From Magallana gigas (lineage: Eukaryota), in assembly GCF_963853765.1 (NCBI RefSeq), contig NC_088860.1, forward strand, positions 10,230,001 to 10,294,000: 64,000 nucleotides of DNA. The letters are read 5' to 3'. The translations under genes were made by a program, and so were the position numbers. How positions within the stretch are numbered: the stretch's first letter is position 1; every line of letters begins with the position of its first letter. Positions 34,127 through 42,800 of the stretch are shown in pieces. Below the pieces are notes generated by a model. It had not been told where the DNA came from. It did not search any database and saw only the letters and a program-made list of their open reading frames with translations.

Positions 34127-35283
34127 AAACCCGTGTGTCGGCATCATCGTCAGATGTCAAAATCTTTTCAGAAACTATGACTGGATGGCATACGCTGGGA
34201 ATAGACAGTTTGTAAACATTTGGATAAGAAGACAAAGAGATCTGACAAGTCATCAACCAAATAATCAGAAAAAGACAACATAATAGGACTTAAAAAGACA
34301 ATAAAATACTTAGCAGTGATCAACAAAGACAGCATAAAGATTTGACAAATAAGTCAACATCATAGGGTGTCGGAAGCAAATTCAAAGTGGGAAGTGGCAG
34401 ACTTATCCAAAATCTTGTCAAGCAATTAAAAAAAACAACACCCCCCCCCCCCTCCAAAAAAAAGTATTCGCCAGTCCTGTAATCCCCTAGGAGGAGAGGA
34501 GTGTTACCGCGGTGCATTGAAAAATTTAATGATAGTTTTAGTATGCTACTATTCAGGTTAATTTTTTCCAGATTAAAACACTTAAGCCTAGTACTGAAAT
34601 ATTAGATAAATGCCCGATACCTTGGTCTTTACAAAAAAAGTTTAAAACAAGGACGTACGGTCAATAAAGAGTTCACAGGGAGTGACTGGGCCTTACACCA
34701 TTGCAAACAAAAATAAAACTCCGGTTTTGCTGGGTTTCTTACTTTAAATGAATAACGCTCTGAAATATGTATTTATTTTATATTTTAAATGAATAAATTA
34801 TAACATAACTTGTGTTTAGCAAGTTTGTATATACATAGAGGATCTTAAAATTGATAATTGATTCTATTTCCAAACCAGCGAATCAAACACTTGACATAAA
34901 AACAAATCCTTTCATCTGTAGATAATTTCAAATACATATGTTTATCAGTTATTATTCATGCAAAGCATCCATCTTTGAAAAGAAACGTTTTAACGGCAAG
35001 TGCCTACAGGTGCGACGAATCTTAATTTGATCGGGTTCGATATTCGTTTTAGTTTACATCAAATTGGTTTCCTTTTTCTGACACAGGTAGAATTTCTACA
35101 AGTTCTGACAAATCAATATATTCTACAATCATGGGTGATGGGTATGTATTTACTATAAAAGTAAGAATTCTCTGCGCAGCCATATTCAAAGCAAACGATC
35201 TTCGATCGTGAATTAATTAGAATAAAGATGTAGTGATCAGCTGACCAGTTGCACTCATTCATAATTTGACCTTATTAGTGAGT

Positions 35284-38200
35284 ATGGAGGCTGAAAAGAT
35301 GTCGGATACATCCTTTAGCGTGGCTAAATTTTTGTCTAGCAAGAAGTCAATGCTACAGAGTTTATTTGATAAATTTACATCTAAAGGAGAACAGGAAAAT
35401 TCTGTTGGGTATGTAGAAATTATATTTTACATGGGGAGGGGGGGGGGGGGGGGGTGGGGTGCTTGTATATTGTGTATTGTTGGAAAGACTTCAATACTGT
35501 GTATTGTGCATTGTTGGGAAGGCTTCAATGAAGGTCTTGTGTATTGGCTAAAAATCATATTAAGTCATAAATAGACCCATGTTATATATCTAAGTGGTTC
35601 GATAGATATTATGATTTGTAAATCATTTTAAAAGTTTATGTTATTACTTTGTAATCATTTTCGATAAAAATCATAGCCAATCTATTTACTGGTAGGTCAT
35701 GCATCAGTTCCAAATCTTCTTAAATAGCCTTTATATTTTATCCAATAAACTTTTTTCTAAAATGTGTATGTTGAGAGGTGGTAAATTTTCAAACCAGAGT
35801 TTGGCAGTCATGTAATTCATAGCGAGATAAAGTTAAAATCTGAATAATATTTAAAGGTTGGTTGGGAATGATACACATCCTTGCTCCTGATACATCATTC
35901 TTTATGATAATTGTTCTGATATGTTTGCTCATTGCAGTTTCACTGATATAGATAAGTAAGTAGAGGCCTCATGATTATTCAACCCATTGAATGCAGAACC
36001 TCCTGTGAACTGTTCATTCAACAAAGAACATTCCCCTCCAGTCTGATGGATTACTAAAACAAATTATTACCGTACCTATTTTTTTTTATTTTCAAGAATG
36101 TGAATCCCAGTGTTTCATTAGTTTTACCTTGGTATAAACTATAAGTCGGTTCATAAAAGTCTGATAAAGCAGTGAAAACGTGAGAAATCCAAAGTACTGT
36201 AATGACTTTTTTTAATTGCCATTCGATCATACCATGTACATGCAATGAAATTTTAATGGAAAATGTATACCCATTAACAAAATTATAACATTTTGATGCA
36301 TTTGATAGTAATCCCCTTTCTGTTGTCCTGTCAGCATCATATCTTATTACTTTAACACAAACATGCACTTTTGATTACCATCAATGTTTTGGGGATACAT
36401 TCTGGTTTTACCTATAGCGATTAAAAAAAAGAGAGGTGTTCACACTGTTTTGAGAAGTCTGTAAGGTAATAAATCAATCTGAATTCAAGGTTTGAAGATT
36501 TTGATTTACAACAGCCCTGCACCTTAACATTGATGTGCCAAATGACACAAATGTGTACTGTGGAATTATTTTTATTAATGGGGGTCAATGTTCATGGGTG
36601 GCCAAAATTTTCCTGGTTTGTGGGGACATAATTTCGTTGGTAGCAAGCATGAATTCTGGGAAAATAGTCCTCTGGATTGCATAAACTAGAACGCAATAGC
36701 CATATCTGATGTCTTTGCAGTGCTTAGAACTGAATCGTTATTGGACAAATTAAAAGCTAACAACATTCAGCTTTTACATATACGGCTGCAAAGGCTGATA
36801 AATTATAGTCGTATGACCAAGTTAATGGAGCATTTTATCCTGCTATATACAAGTCTAACATGTGACTGTGATAGACAGACTATGTAAACAGTAAAAAGCA
36901 ATTACTGCTTAACAGTTTGGGACTACTCAAAAGTTCATTACAGTATTACTTTATTACTTATCTTATATTGTTACTGTCATTTTTTGATTCATTGTATTAA
37001 ATAATGTTATTATTTTTTCTGTTCAAATAAACACATCGATTTTCTCCTTTATACATGACCACATGGGTCCGAATGTATCAGTCATTTTATGACAAAAAAA
37101 CAGCTAGTGTAATAAATATTCATCAAATGCTTGAATACAATTTGTTGGGATGTAAAATTCATGGGCAAGGGTAACCCGTGAAAGCCATAAACATTGGTCT
37201 CCCACAAACAATGATGATTTAACAGTATGTTTGATCCAAGGTCACTGCATTATCCCTCTACTAAGGAAATGTGAAAAGACAATTACAAGATTTCAAGAAG
37301 TCTTAAGTAGGCACGTATCGGGTACCTACTATATTTTACCAATGATTTTTCACCTGTTTGGTTTACAGACCAAGTTTTGAAGAGGTCAACTCCATAGCTC
37401 AGAACATTTTGGGTCGTGTGAAACACCGTCCAAAGATCGGCATCGTGTGTGGGTCCGGTTTAGGTGGTCTAGCAGACGATGTCCAGGATGCTGAGATTCT
37501 CCCTTACAGCGAAATACCGACTTTCCCAGTCAGTACAGGTAGGTCAAGGTTAATTCAAGGTTAAATGTTGACTACAGTTCTTTATCTCATATATAAGTAT
37601 AGGGCCAAGGTTGTTCATTCATCTGGATTGTTTGTCTTCAGGGTTCTCCTTTTATTTTTCTTTGAATAGTGATTATGAGTGAAGGAGCAAGTACATGTAT
37701 AGAAAATCACTTTGCTTGCAAATAACTTTACCATAAATAATTTAGTATAACAAAGTAAGTTGGAGTTTTAAAAAAGTTTTTGTTATACATTGTACATAGC
37801 AATATATGACTTCTGTTCTTCTAGTTCCAGGACATATGGGAAAGCTGGTGTTTGGTATACTGGAGGGTAAAACCGTGGTGCTAATGAGGGGACGGTTACA
37901 CTGCTATGAAGGCTATCCTATGTGGAAGGTGAAGCACTGCATGATTGAAGACTCAGATTGATAAATGTATTATGTTCCTGAGAACTAGAAATTTCCTTGT
38001 TCCACTCCGATCAAATCCATTCCATGGGGAACTAAATGTATTGTCATTATAGACTAAAAGGATTGACACGTCACTTCCAACACATTAGGAATAAGAGTGT
38101 CATTAATTGTTTGGTAGATTTATGTCTCTATTAACTCTTGATGAACATTTCATGGGATATGTCAAAGAATCTATTCTTTATGTGCCAAATATTTTATTTT

Positions 38201-39864
38201 CCATGCTCTTTAGAAATAACCATTGCTTTAACTGTAGATTAATACTATATTAAATAATGCTAAACATATAAGAATTTAAGGAGATTAATAATGCATAATT
38301 TTATTTGTATCTCTGAATATTTGCTATTTCTGCTTTATTGATTATTGAAATACATGTATTAATATTGGAAACCTACTGGTATATTAACATTAAACAAAGA
38401 ATTGATTTTGAACTCAGACCACAATTCCAATCCGAGTAATGAAGGCTCTGGGGGTAACTACTATATTCCTGACAAACGCAGCCGGTGGCATCAACCCAGA
38501 CTTTAATGTTGGCGACATGATGATTATTCGGGATCACATAGATCTTCCTGGCTTAACTGGCGAGTGTGTTCTTCGCGGAGCCAATGATGAGAGGTAGCAG
38601 TTCATTGATTTTGTTTTGTAGGCACCATTACATTTAGAGCCCAAATTATAATGTTTCTGTAGCTTACATGATATTACTCAGTCTTATCGATCATATGTTA
38701 CAAATTCATGAATTTTCATGAATTTTCTTCCATCATGGTCCCATCCAATTTCTGTCTGATATAATGACAACAGTTACGACTCTCCTATTTCTGTAGGAAC
38801 TGATCTTATCTCTGCAGATTTGGACCTCGTTTTCTTGCCACAGTTGATACTTATGATCCGGAGCTTCGAGCTACCTGCAAAAAGGTTTTCCAAGACCTTG
38901 GTCTGAGTCAGCTCATGAGAGAAGGAACCTATGTCATGATCGGGGGACCGACGTTTGAAACAGTGGCCGAGTCAAGGTTACTGAAAGCCTTTGGGGGTGA
39001 TGCAGTCGGTGAGAATCTATAATTTTGGATGTAAAAAATCTTAATAATTAATTCATGTGTTTGCAAAATTGAAGTCAATTGGGATTGACTGAAATTGTCA
39101 CAGCAAAGCTACCATAGAATAAAACTTGTTGACAAGGTTAACAGGCAACAGTTGAACTGTTGGACTGAAGTGTAAACTTTAAACGTGGGCAACTGTTTTA
39201 TTGCTGTCAGGTTTGGACCTCGTTTCCTTGCCACAAATTCAGCCTTGAATGCCAGTCAACATAATAATTACGATTTATCATCATGGATACTCAAACATCT
39301 TCATTTATGTATTTGTCAAGACCTTGTAAAGTTTTAAGTGAGGTATTGAGAGAGGATTGAAGTTAACAGATCCTTAAGACAAAAAACCCTTTTACACTTT
39401 TGAAATAGGTTCATTTAACCATGTGGTTAACTTTAACACTGAGTATTACATAGAGTTAACACATTATTAGGGTCAGTTTAAGATCTTTTTGTTGCACTTG
39501 TCAGTTACTAAGACAATGTTGCTTAAAAGATTTACACTATTTAATATTAAGAATCCTGAATAAAACTCATTATCACAAATAATATCTAGACAAGTATCTG
39601 GTTTGCAAATACTAAATAATACAAATAAAGGGACATAATTCCTATCCTTTCGTTTTAGGTATGAGCACCGTTGCTGAGGCCATTGTGGCCCGACACATGG
39701 GGATGCGGGTGTTTGGCCTCTCTCTGATCACTGACATGTGCTGCCTGAGTTACGACACTGCCAACCACACCACCCACGAAGAAGTTCTTGCCATTGGTCA
39801 GAAAAGAGCTGAGGATCTGAAGGCTATCGTCATGCGTCTTCTGAAGGACACAACTGTAGAATAA
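35284..39864 (+). CDS. PNP: Purine nucleoside phosphorylase, trimeric (mammalian) type, about 323 aa, Asp at the Asn243-equivalent position
   Basis: Exons 35284-35408 (start ATG uncertain), 37369-37538, 37825-37928, 38418-38593, 38818-39008, 39659-39864; GT-AG, 972 nt in frame. Internal exon sizes 170/104/176/191 match my recollection of human PNP. Motifs [43 protein letters not shown]. Confidence 0.95.
36556..37227. mobile_element. TACTGT...ACAGTA MITE, apparently interrupted by a ~480-bp insertion, in PNP intron 1
   Basis: Left end tactgtggaatt, right end tttaacagta; MITE-like halves at about 36556-36650 and 37135-37227. Confidence 0.5.
39208..39337 (+). pseudogene. Vestigial duplicate of PNP exon 5 inside intron 5
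   Basis: 26/28 nt identical to the exon-5 acceptor and start (38815-38842); both differences synonymous; in-frame stop at 39335-39337. Confidence 0.7.
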
Positions 39865-42800
39865 TGAAGGACATGGTTTTTAGGAGTTAGTGAGCCATTT
39901 GCTGGATTTTTGGGTTTTGTAATTTTATTTTTAGCTTGTATTTTACCACCTAATTCCTGTCTTCCCGAGAGAGATTTTTCAAAAGACCAGGGAAAACATA
40001 TACATGTACTTGCTTTTTTTTATTTTATATGTAGAATATTAGTTTTACTTACAATTTTTTGTTATTTTTTTTTGTTATATTGCATGTGCTTATAGTTTAT
40101 TCATGTTGACCTAGTACTTTTATTTATTTAACATCCATTTCCCTTAGAATATTTAGTCCCATGTCTTTCATTTTGCAATTTTCTTCTCACATGACCATAT
40201 CATGATTTAAGATAAGAACAAGTATTGGCATTTATACACTCATTCCTACAATAATTTTTTGCAGTTTTCATTTTTTTTTACCAGCACATTGATTCCAAGC
40301 AAAAATAATTGGTAAAGGGGAATACACATGCAAGTTTTTAAGATGCATTACTGCATATTGGTTCTGAATTGTTGAAACCCTTCTGCCCATATTTTTGGCC
40401 CTTTTCTTTAAAATGCATAAGTTTCAGCATAATTGAGAATATTTTGTTACCTACCATCTCCTGCATATGAAGAATTTCAATATTTTAATAGGAGAGGATT
40501 CTGTTTATTTACCTTTCTCTTTTTTTTATGATTTTTGTTAAAATCTTAAAGCTGTATGATCCAAATCAAAGTCTTATTCAGGCAGAACAATACTGGGTTG
40601 AACTGATTACCCTATTCATTAAATAAATGAGAAACTCTTAAATTATTTTCATATCATTTGATATTATTATGACTTTGCAGAGTTAAATAATGTTTACTAT
40701 GATGGACCTTTTATAATTTTTAAAAACAACTTTCATAGTTATGTAAAAAGTTTTTATCAATATTAAAGATATCAAAAGTATTTTTAAGGAGGTCAGGCAA
40801 TAATGCATTTTATCAGACCATACACCTTTATTTATTAGTCATTACAAAAACAATTGCTTAGTGGTCATCTATCAATCATATTTAATCCAGACCAAATTTC
40901 TTTTTTTCTTTCCTTATATAGTGCCATATCTTAATTCAGGCAAGGTACTTGAAAACAATCTTAGTTAGTCAATCATCATTTGCTAAAATTCCTGTCAATA
41001 TGATTATTTTTAGTAATGGTGTTTTTATTTGCATTATTTTGCCCAGAAATTAATTTAAAATCACTTTAATCAAAGTCCTGTTGCTATTGTATGGCAGTGC
41101 CGAAATTACAGATCATTTTACACTGTGATATTAATCTAACAGTTCTTAATTATTGCATTGTTGTTGATAGAAAGGTTGATGAAATTTTGATATAAAATTA
41201 TCAATTTCATGTTTTCCACCAGTTAATGATGATAAGTTATTTGAATTTTTGAAAATATATCTGTTTCTTTTTATATATAGAATCAATGTTATTTTATTGT
41301 TACTTGTTATTAAGTCCAGGTGGTTTTGGACATCTTCAGATATTTAAGCGACTACCATACATGGTCATTAATTTGTTTTTGTGTATGCATGTATCAAAAA
41401 CTATTTGTGCTAGCAGAGTGATGCATTGTAAGTAAAAAAAAAATAGAACAGTAAATTCCTTTCTTCTGTTAGCAGGGTTGAATATTGTATCAATTTGAAA
41501 ATGATGGATTTTGTGCTTGCTTGCAAATTTTCTATTAAAAAAAATGTACTGTATGTGCACTTGTAATGCTGGTATGCATAATGTAGATTTTTTTCAATTC
41601 TTGTTATAATGGGATGAATTCATTAGGTCCCAAATTTGTGTAGATCTACAAATTTTCAATGATCCTACTAAACATGTTCCTGATATATGCTTACAAACTT
41701 CCAAAGGAATATTGAATGATGTCAAATTCATCTGCATCATGAAAAATGCAAATTTTTTTGTTTCCCTCTTTTTTTTTTTGAAAAATTATGTAGTCATACT
41801 TTTTGTATTCAGTGCAATATTTGAAGATAAGGGGACAGCCAGTACTCTATGTATGAGATTTATTTGGTTAATTACATAACAGAGAATGCATCTCATTTTT
41901 GACTTGTGTAGCAATGGAATGCTTACAAAACTTTCTCTCTCTCAGGAAACTTCAATATCTTGTCATATCAAGTGTTTCTATATCTATAGATTCTCTGAAT
42001 CTCAAGCGTTCTATATTAAGAGAGCACCGTGGCGTTTTCTTATTATTTGTTTCACTTCCTTAGTTAATATCTCAGGTTTAATCTCTGAACAAGCAAAATA
42101 TTATTGGCATTTACTGGTACAATATTTAAGGTTTTGTATGTTTCTTCCTAAATTTTATCCATTTAATCTATATAAACTTGCAGATATTTAATTAATATTT
42201 ACACAGACGTTACGAGTTATGTACAACATTTCATATCCAACAGTACAGCTTCACAATGTTAAGGCTTATTGTAATGTTCCTCACACTTGCACATTAATAT
42301 GAGAGCCTTAGCATTATGGAGATGTAAAGAGTGTAATGACCGTTAACTTTGGATTGTTCAGAATTCTATTGTTATCCATCAATAAAAAAGACACACTGGT
42401 ACGTAAATTGGAGTTGTTTTATTTCATATTCTTTCATCAGTAATTATAACTATCAACTGATCAAGAACCAGAAATTTTCCAGGAGGAAAAACTCTGTCTT
42501 CTTCATTCAATGATCATGCAATGGATAATATGATTAGAATAGTTGATTGAAAAATGTTGAACAATTGATTATATGTAATAATTGGCCAATGAATAAATAT
42601 ACTAGTTTTAGATAAACCTAATAAACTGCATGAAACAAAACAATAGTCATATGTAACAACTAAATAGGAACATGTACACTGATGGAAATTTTGACAATTT
42701 AGCAGCTAGATTACCAGTGAGTAGATTGGCAAAACTCATAAACCTTGGGATAACATACTATCCCTAATAATTTACATACCCGTTTTTTTTTAATTTGGAA

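Follow-up and report, generated by a model that had tools for sequence, protein, structure and literature searches.

An aspartate in place of Asn243 in a trimeric-type purine nucleoside phosphorylase of oysters and other molluscs: a candidate adenosine phosphorylase

Introduction

A gene for a purine nucleoside phosphorylase (PNP) lies in a stretch of 64,000 nucleotides from the oyster Magallana gigas (assembly GCF_963853765.1, contig NC_088860.1, positions 10,230,001 to 10,294,000 of the forward strand). We call the whole stretch the window and count all positions within it, unless another contig is named. The protein resembles the mammalian trimeric enzyme but carries aspartate where human PNP has Asn243. 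This aspartate is fixed in an old paralog clade that comprises bivalves and all major gastropod lineages, and it exists there side by side with canonical Asn243 PNPs. It is not a singular event in the oyster; the proteins of the clade are already in databases as “purine nucleoside phosphorylase” or “purine nucleoside phosphorylase-like”. By analogy with engineered enzymes, the oyster protein probably has substantial adenosine activity.

The position is a critical one. According to two papers, Asn243 of human PNP forms hydrogen bonds with O6 and N7 of 6-oxopurines and thereby enforces specificity, and its replacement by Asp raises the kcat for adenosine about 5000-fold (PMC6128611, PMC5074518). 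The human double mutant E201Q:N243D cleaves adenosine-type prodrugs (PMC2799393). In the wild-type PNP of Kluyveromyces lactis, adenosine activity is undetectable; its N256D mutant, which retains the Glu, has a kcat/Km of 2.2 × 10^6 for adenosine versus 1.6 × 10^5 for inosine (PMC5074518). Asp also occupies the equivalent site of those hexameric PNPs that take adenosine as a substrate (PMC5074518). Trimeric PNPs are described in reviews as 6-oxopurine-specific (PMC5074518, PMC6983109). Our literature search, outside which most subscription journals lie, brought up nothing relevant on a natural Asp243 animal PNP or a mollusc adenosine phosphorylase, neither a report of the clade's aspartate nor an assay of any of its members.

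Asp243 and the active site

The codon in question is GAC at 39733-39735, on the forward strand. It is found in the last exon, exon 6, 24 residues past the Met with which this exon begins to be read (it is the 25th codon if the Met is counted), and it encodes residue 243 of the 285-residue oyster protein, too. In a phmmer search of all PDB chains, residues 1-61 of exon 6 align without a gap to residues 219-279 of human PNP, which places the Asp on Asn243. The best match is 3gb9, an engineered human PNP with Asp in this very column. An earlier note, made from the letters of the window, had identified this GAC as the equivalent of Asn243, and the alignment bears it out.

Transcripts and DNA were inspected over 34400-40300. 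The material consisted of RNA-seq contig sets from two different studies (X15 and X16), a raw polyA run (X21) and an independent DNA run (X3). Over exon 6 no differing letter was seen in the RNA contigs (39658-40061 in X15, 39658-40300 in X16) or in the DNA contig (39626-40073 in X3). Since the RNA contigs and the independent DNA run are identical there, GAC is not an assembly error. A transcript of a sister species (L018) also has GAC at codon 243. The confirmation from reads and transcripts that the earlier note had called for is thus at hand.

The remainder of the active site is kept at the mammalian numbers. The phosphate site comprises Ser33, His64, Arg84, His86 and Ser220; the ribose site Tyr88, Phe159, Phe200, Met219 and His257, with Phe159 being contributed by the neighbouring subunit; the base site Ala116, Ala117, Gly118, Glu201 and Thr242. 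The immediate base pocket departs from the mammalian one at two positions only: residue 243 is Asp, not Asn, and residue 244 is Met, not Lys. Of the two features that characterise the canonical 6-oxopurine-specific animal PNP, the oyster protein therefore lacks Asn243 and has Glu201, which contacts N1-H. The exchange of Lys244 for Met and the retention of the phosphate, ribose and base residues had been noticed before; both hold for the complete 285-residue protein.

Family, fold and oligomeric state

The oyster protein is a low-molecular-mass trimeric PNP of the NP-I family (PF01048), as judged by profile, fold, catalytic residues and predicted trimer. Three of its exons score above the Pfam cut-off for PF01048 (PNP_UDP_1) with 44.6, 36.9 and 44.9 bits, and all orthologs carry this domain. 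The 38 PDB sequence matches listed for exon 6 are named purine nucleoside phosphorylase, apart from one “pentosyltransferase”, and have chains of 266-373 residues. Those that can be identified, all the best ones included, are mammalian trimeric PNPs. It is no member of two other subfamilies: the MTAP type is recognised by the motif NMTTxPE and by being closest to MTAP, while the oyster gene reads GMSTVAE, and the hexameric PNPs of the DeoD type have subunits of about 235 residues.

For the fold, trimer and homolog searches a protein of 96% identity and the same length (P0191) served as a stand-in. Its AlphaFold2 model (pLDDT 88.7) matches bovine and human PNP in Foldseek with TM scores of 0.95-0.97 and root-mean-square deviations of 1.3-1.7 Å. 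All 50 structure matches listed are bovine, human or mosquito PNPs of the trimeric type.

The protein is also predicted to form a homotrimer. Modelled in three copies, it yields an ipSAE of 0.94 versus 0.00 for the best of three controls, a contact agreement of at least 92% between runs and a pLDDT of about 90. When this score was calibrated, 21 of 30 proteins solved as pairs of one chain passed the mark, and none of the 23 solved as single chains did; the pass may, however, stem from the memory of solved PNP trimers and signals likeness, not proof. The predicted interface takes in residues 158-163 and 195-205.

An old clade of bivalves and gastropods

Homologs were gathered by full-length ortholog searches, with the near-identical full-length proteins P0180, P0188 and P0191 as queries, and by a profile built from 30 Asp-type sequences, which scores only the 8000 candidates that share most words. 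Asp243 is present in each protein whose identity with the oyster protein is 61-99%. The named ones come from the bivalves Crassostrea virginica, Pinctada, Sinanodonta, Potamilus and Solemya and from the gastropods Patella, Lottia, Haliotis, Gigantopelta, Pomacea, Littorina, Batillaria, Babylonia and Nucella. At 52-57% identity follow the Asp243 orthologs of heterobranchs, i.e., of Aplysia, Elysia, Plakobranchus, Biomphalaria, Physella, Lymnaea, Candidula, Bradybaena and Arion. Asp243 and Asn243 proteins were seen in the same taxon in Patella, Gigantopelta, Sinanodonta, Aplysia, Lymnaea, Bradybaena and Arion. In the full-length searches, all hits from arthropods, vertebrates, amphioxus, hemichordates, brachiopods, placozoans and cestodes have Asn at this position.

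For a maximum-likelihood tree of 79 sequences, columns 243 and 201 were masked. In this tree the 40 Asp proteins, which are the closest homologs of the oyster protein, come together in a single clade with a support of 100/99 (UFBoot/SH-aLRT), and every named member of the clade is a bivalve or a gastropod. Within this clade the heterobranchs make up a subclade of their own (100/100) on a long branch. The mollusc Asn-type proteins form another clade (100/95). Residue 243 is Asp in 40 of the 40 sequences of the Asp clade and Asn in all 39 Asn-type sequences of the tree; a single change of state accounts for the pattern. In the best tree the two mollusc clades are sisters, at a support of only 48/87; this would correspond to a possible duplication on the mollusc stem. 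A phylogeny had been proposed beforehand as a way to see whether an Asp243 clade coexists with Asn243 paralogs in molluscs. It does.

The profile search gives a consistent picture. Clade members score 475-543 bits, and a truncated Potamilus entry of 230 residues still reaches 430. The best full-length protein outside the clade scores 436 bits and has Asn; two two-domain entries, which score higher by summation, are left out here. Named clade members from cephalopods, chitons, mussels or scallops did not turn up, which in a search prefiltered to 8000 candidates is not evidence of absence. When exon 6 alone was searched against representatives, the hits consisted mostly of unnamed fragments, and Asp was found in 22 of 150.

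Some database entries call for a comment. The Crassostrea virginica ortholog P0270 reads IVADQG where its relatives read IVCGSGLGG, so that Ser33 appears as Gln, and His64 appears as Ala. The likely cause is a mis-spliced gene model and not a real loss of the phosphate loop. P0380 from Taenia asiatica (562 residues) and P0381 from Callosobruchus chinensis (522 residues) have two PNP domains per polypeptide. Asn243 is present in both domains of the former and in the C-terminal domain of the latter, the N-terminal domain of which is gapped at this column. Both entries may result from a fusion of tandem genes or from merged annotations.

Selection, signature positions and the loss of Glu201

The oyster Asp243 gene is under strong purifying selection. 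The comparison with the sister-species transcript reveals 39 synonymous and 11 non-synonymous differences, equivalent to a dN/dS of 0.078 at a dS of 0.22.

Residue 243 did not change alone. If a signature position is defined as one conserved to at least 85% in the non-heterobranch part of the Asp clade, with a residue seldom or never seen in Asn-type proteins, 15 such positions emerge: 82, 93, 137, 142, 144-146, 162, 163, 195, 199, 206, 243, 255 and 256. Among the changes are Q82R, which lies beside Arg84, N137D, the sequence ECV at 144-146 in place of x-N-P, M162T and N243D; A255T and N256T lie on either side of His257 in the gate loop. Only at N137D and N243D is each group uniform, with Asn throughout the one and Asp throughout the other. 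The predicted inter-subunit interface, 55 residues lining the neighbouring active site, holds eight of the 15 signatures (Fisher one-sided p = 0.0025).

Five further substitutions had been listed in the earlier note as signs of a diverged paralog. All of them (RGRL, DHID, CVL, LAT and VAE) are indeed present, but they are not of one kind: R82, D137, V146 and T162 are shared by the whole clade, and VAE is specific to the oyster.

The heterobranchs went further. In their Asp-type proteins (P0283, P0284, P0287, P0289, P0294, P0305, P0307, P0313, P0319 and P0325) Glu201 is replaced by Ser, Cys or Ala, and by Thr in one unnamed transcript, and Ser33 is replaced by Thr. Because Glu201 was lost later in this very clade, 6-oxopurines are presumably no longer the selected substrates of the clade to which the heterobranchs belong. 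This loss lends independent evolutionary support to a shift in specificity.

Related genes in the oyster genome

A six-frame scan for PF01048 over the whole 564-Mb assembly detected five loci: the Asp243 gene on chromosome C8, two tandem genes on C3 and two tandem genes on C7. The C3 pair (L014 and L015, C3:4905370-4906313 and 4922254-4924112) has Asn243 and reads SLITNCC; exon by exon its identity with the C8 gene is about 42-60%. The earlier suggestion of a diverged paralog is thereby confirmed, and this paralog coexists with Asn243 PNPs within one and the same genome. The C7 pair (L016 and L017, C7:4458610-4459489 and 4471371-4472123) is MTAP-like, reads NMTTVPEV and matches the C8 gene over short stretches alone, with 27-38% identity. 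Within both pairs the tandem spacing is about 13-17 kb.

The genome further contains an APRT gene at C3:34309412-34310624 and genes of the A_deaminase family on C5, C6 and C7. The idea of an Asp-type PNP that stands in for an absent adenosine deaminase had to be rejected as stated, since A_deaminase-family genes are present.

Proposed function and alternatives

Because the phosphate, ribose and purine pockets are unchanged, the oyster enzyme should have retained the phosphorolysis of purine ribonucleosides and deoxyribonucleosides. The side chain of Asp243 could no longer donate a hydrogen bond to O6 of hypoxanthine or guanine. It would accept a hydrogen bond from the N6-amino group and/or protonate N7, much like Asp204 of the hexameric PNPs. 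Adenosine and deoxyadenosine would become good substrates, with adenine and ribose-1-phosphate or deoxyribose-1-phosphate as products, and the adenine would be returned to AMP by the APRT of the genome. Since Glu201 is kept, the oyster enzyme is expected to be broad in specificity, with adenosine at least as good as inosine, as is the case for K. lactis N256D. The heterobranch orthologs, in which Glu201 has given way to Ser, Cys or Ala, would be specialised for 6-aminopurines.

A more ambitious scenario, which we propose tentatively and would not quite call probable, reads as follows. Bivalves and gastropods would possess a dedicated natural 6-aminopurine nucleoside phosphorylase on the trimeric scaffold and, with it, a deaminase-independent route from adenosine via adenine to AMP that vertebrates lack. 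N243D would have come first and the loss of Glu201 later, in the heterobranchs, and changes in the gate loop and the interface would be compensatory. Several points weigh against the proposed adenosine activity. With A_deaminase-family and MTAP-like genes present, metabolism does not require an adenosine phosphorylase. Oysters have kept Glu201; inosine and guanosine may therefore stay the main substrates. Base specificity is also set by the conformation of the gate loop, as is known from PNP2 of Schistosoma mansoni (PMC6128611). Finally, the other fixed changes of the clade (Q82R, N137D, ECV, A255T and N256T) could redirect specificity beyond what the precedent of single-site mutants teaches.

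The latter point leads to the most serious alternative. The preferred substrate might be another one, be it deoxyadenosine only, an N6- or 2-substituted adenosine, a pyrimidine nucleoside as in S. mansoni PNP2, or nicotinamide riboside. The accumulation of signatures, eight of 15 in the predicted interface and two next to His257, would fit such a change, and so would S33T and E201S/C/A, which the heterobranchs have in addition. There also is a precedent, as S. mansoni PNP2 acquired its cytidine and adenosine activity via changes of the gate loop (PMC6128611). However, the ribose contacts and the residues that sandwich the purine are unchanged, which fits an ordinary purine riboside with a 5'-OH, and the simplest meaning of an exchange of Asn for Asp is the acceptance of 6-aminopurines. 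We consider another preferred substrate unlikely, if well worth keeping in mind.

Alternatively, the paralog could be essentially an inosine/guanosine phosphorylase in which Asp243, perhaps in protonated form, just stands in for Asn; the paralogs would then differ mainly in expression, localisation or regulation. Glu201 and every other contact to 6-oxopurines are, after all, kept in bivalves and non-heterobranch gastropods, K. lactis N256D retains about a tenth of the wild-type activity with inosine (PMC5074518), and an N-terminally extended isoform of the oyster protein (see below) hints at differences in localisation. Yet the split is a strict one: Asn in all 39 Asn-type tree sequences and in all further hits from non-mollusc animals versus Asp in 40 argues for a functional difference. 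Also, the loss of Glu201 in heterobranchs is hard to square with 6-oxopurine substrates, and adenosine activity rose sharply in human N243D and K. lactis N256D alike, the two single mutants of this kind with kinetics in the cited papers. An unaltered substrate range is in our opinion quite improbable.

An error in GAC or an unexpressed, decaying pseudogene can be dismissed for all practical purposes, for the sole oddity of the gene is a 28-nucleotide copy of the exon-5 acceptor in intron 5, and against this stand the presence of GAC in two RNA runs, an independent DNA run and the transcript of the sister species, an open reading frame, canonical splice sites confirmed by RNA, the low dN/dS of 0.078 and Asp in 40 orthologs.

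Gene structure and transcripts

The PNP gene is intact, spliced and transcribed. It extends from 35072 to at least 40300 on the forward strand and has six exons; the coding sequence runs from 35131 to 39864 and specifies a 285-residue product that starts with MGDG|PSFEE. All five introns are of the GT-AG type and are bridged by RNA contigs of two studies and by raw polyA reads.

Exon 1a (35072-35141) contains the 5' untranslated region, the start codon at 35131-35133, the codons for M-G-D and the first two bases of Gly4; its donor GT is at 35142-43. The RNA contigs of X15 and X16 start at 35072 and are preceded by adapter sequence. The joint from 35141 to 37369 is covered with a depth of 121 and 179 in X15 and X16, respectively, and also by two raw reads. 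An alternative exon 1b (35299-35408, forward strand, with an ATG at 35299 and another in-frame ATG upstream at 35284) is linked to exon 2 by a minor junction; this joint, 35407/8 to 37368/9, is seen in one RNA contig of X16 at a depth of 5. The resulting isoform has 318 residues, with an N-terminal extension of 37 residues. The translation of exon 1b plus exon 2 matches the N-terminus of the database protein P0180 (98.9% identical; 23 member sequences).

The other exons, likewise on the forward strand, carry the residues discussed above. Exon 2 (37369-37538; PSFEE...FPVST) is bounded by AG and GT and contains the GSGLGG phosphate loop with Ser33; its joint to exon 3 occurs in X15, X16 and X21. 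Exon 3 (37825-37928; (V)PGHMGK...YPMWK) contributes His64, the clade signature Arg82, Arg84, His86 and Tyr88, and its joint from 37928 to 38418 was found in X16 and X21. Exon 4 (38418-38593; TTIPIRV...ANDE(R)) provides Ala116-Ala117-Gly118 as well as the clade signatures Asp137 and Glu144-Cys145-Val146. The joint from 38593 to 38818 is present in all three RNA runs, as is that from 39008 to 39659, by which exon 5 (38818-39008; (R)FGPRF...GDAV(G), with Phe159, Phe200 and Glu201) is connected to exon 6. The coding part of exon 6 (39659-39864; (G)MSTV...DTTVE) follows an acceptor AG at 39657-58 and ends with the stop codon TAA at 39862-39864. It encodes Met219, Ser220, Thr242, Asp243 and Thr255-Thr256 followed by His257. 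The Gly codon that precedes its Met is split by a phase-1 intron, and in-frame reading resumes at 39661. According to an X16 contig, the 3' untranslated region reaches at least to 40300.

The copy in intron 5 lies at 39208-39235. It is 93% identical to the exon-5 acceptor and the first codons of this exon (38815-38842). Its use as an alternative exon, the frame of which would read RFGPRFLAT and then diverge, is ruled out by an RNA depth of zero. The copy looks like a small untranscribed intronic duplication.

Other peculiarities of the window concern repeats. Low-complexity stretches of G-runs and C-runs occur at 35385-35581 and 34428-34452. Their depth in the DNA run is about 4960, and raw RNA reads show strand-switching, back-joints and poly-G loose ends there. 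This looks like a high-copy simple repeat combined with a sequencing artefact and not like biology of the PNP gene. Tandem arrays are found at 21287-22044 and 26571-27763; they consist of 4.5 and 7.1 copies, respectively, of 166-168-bp units with 84-87% matches and are satellite or MITE-like (miniature inverted-repeat transposable element) DNA. The second array generates the repeated short open frames in the six-frame listing of the window.

Implications

The mollusc Asp243 clade is a counterpart in nature of the classic experiments on specificity reversal, and in one of its lineages the second engineered position, 201, was changed, too. If the adenosine activity is real, the maps of purine salvage will change for molluscs, among them the oysters of aquaculture and the snails that host schistosomes, parasites that depend on host purines. 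The clade would then also offer Asp243 scaffolds, shaped by evolution and presumably stable, for biocatalysis with nucleoside analogues and for the activation of prodrugs, and a clean system in which the tuning of a specificity switch by second-shell and interface residues can be studied. Should adenosine not be used, the N243D rule would be shown to depend on context.

Comparison with known systems

The closest relatives of known structure are the mammalian trimeric PNPs (EC 2.4.2.1; PDB 1rr6, 1a9t). The oyster protein is 52-54% identical to them over its full length and shares their active-site numbering. It differs by Asp243, Met244 and the clade changes at 82, 137, 144-146, 162, 255 and 256, and the mammalian enzyme excludes adenosine. 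The engineered human variants N243D and E201Q:N243D (PDB 3gb9, 3ggs) have Asp243 on the same scaffold, and the heterobranchs altered the second engineered site, 201, as well. The mollusc state, in contrast, is natural, ancient, under selection and accompanied by further co-evolved changes. Nor is the double mutant copied in detail: the oyster keeps Glu201, and the heterobranchs have Ser, Cys or Ala at 201, not Gln.

The closest model of the oyster configuration, Asp243 together with Glu201 in the trimeric class, is the N256D mutant of K. lactis PNP. Unlike the oyster protein, this mutant of a fungal enzyme was made in the laboratory and never underwent evolutionary tuning.

The oyster enzyme would not be the sole low-molecular-mass PNP of animals to cleave adenosine, since S. 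mansoni PNP2 (PDB 5cxs) does so. PNP2, too, is a paralog beside a canonical enzyme, and it uses adenosine about as well as inosine (PMC6128611). Its solution is a different one, however. It keeps Asn245, relies on a remodelled gate loop and A118L and accepts cytidine (PMC6128611), and it stands outside the mollusc Asp243 clade.

DeoD of Escherichia coli (with Asp204), AdoP of Bacillus cereus and MTAP have Asp at the structurally equivalent base position and accept 6-aminopurine nucleosides (PMC5074518). They belong to other NP-I subfamilies, the hexameric PNPs with subunits of about 26 kDa and MTAP with its hydrophobic 5' pocket. Mammalian PNP is a much closer relative of the oyster protein than these enzymes are.

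The same natural switch, of independent origin, is met in bacterial PNPs of the PunA type. At column 243, 20 of 78 loci (L023-L102) read ...ITD..., in a sample biased to Asp by the use of an Asp-type fragment as query. The Asp-type loci belong to several Paenibacillus species, Clostridia, Caloramator, Desnuesiella, Bacteroidota and metagenome-assembled genomes of Chloroflexota. To our knowledge, these bacterial proteins have not been characterised biochemically; judged by their sequences, they may be adenosine phosphorylases of the trimeric class.

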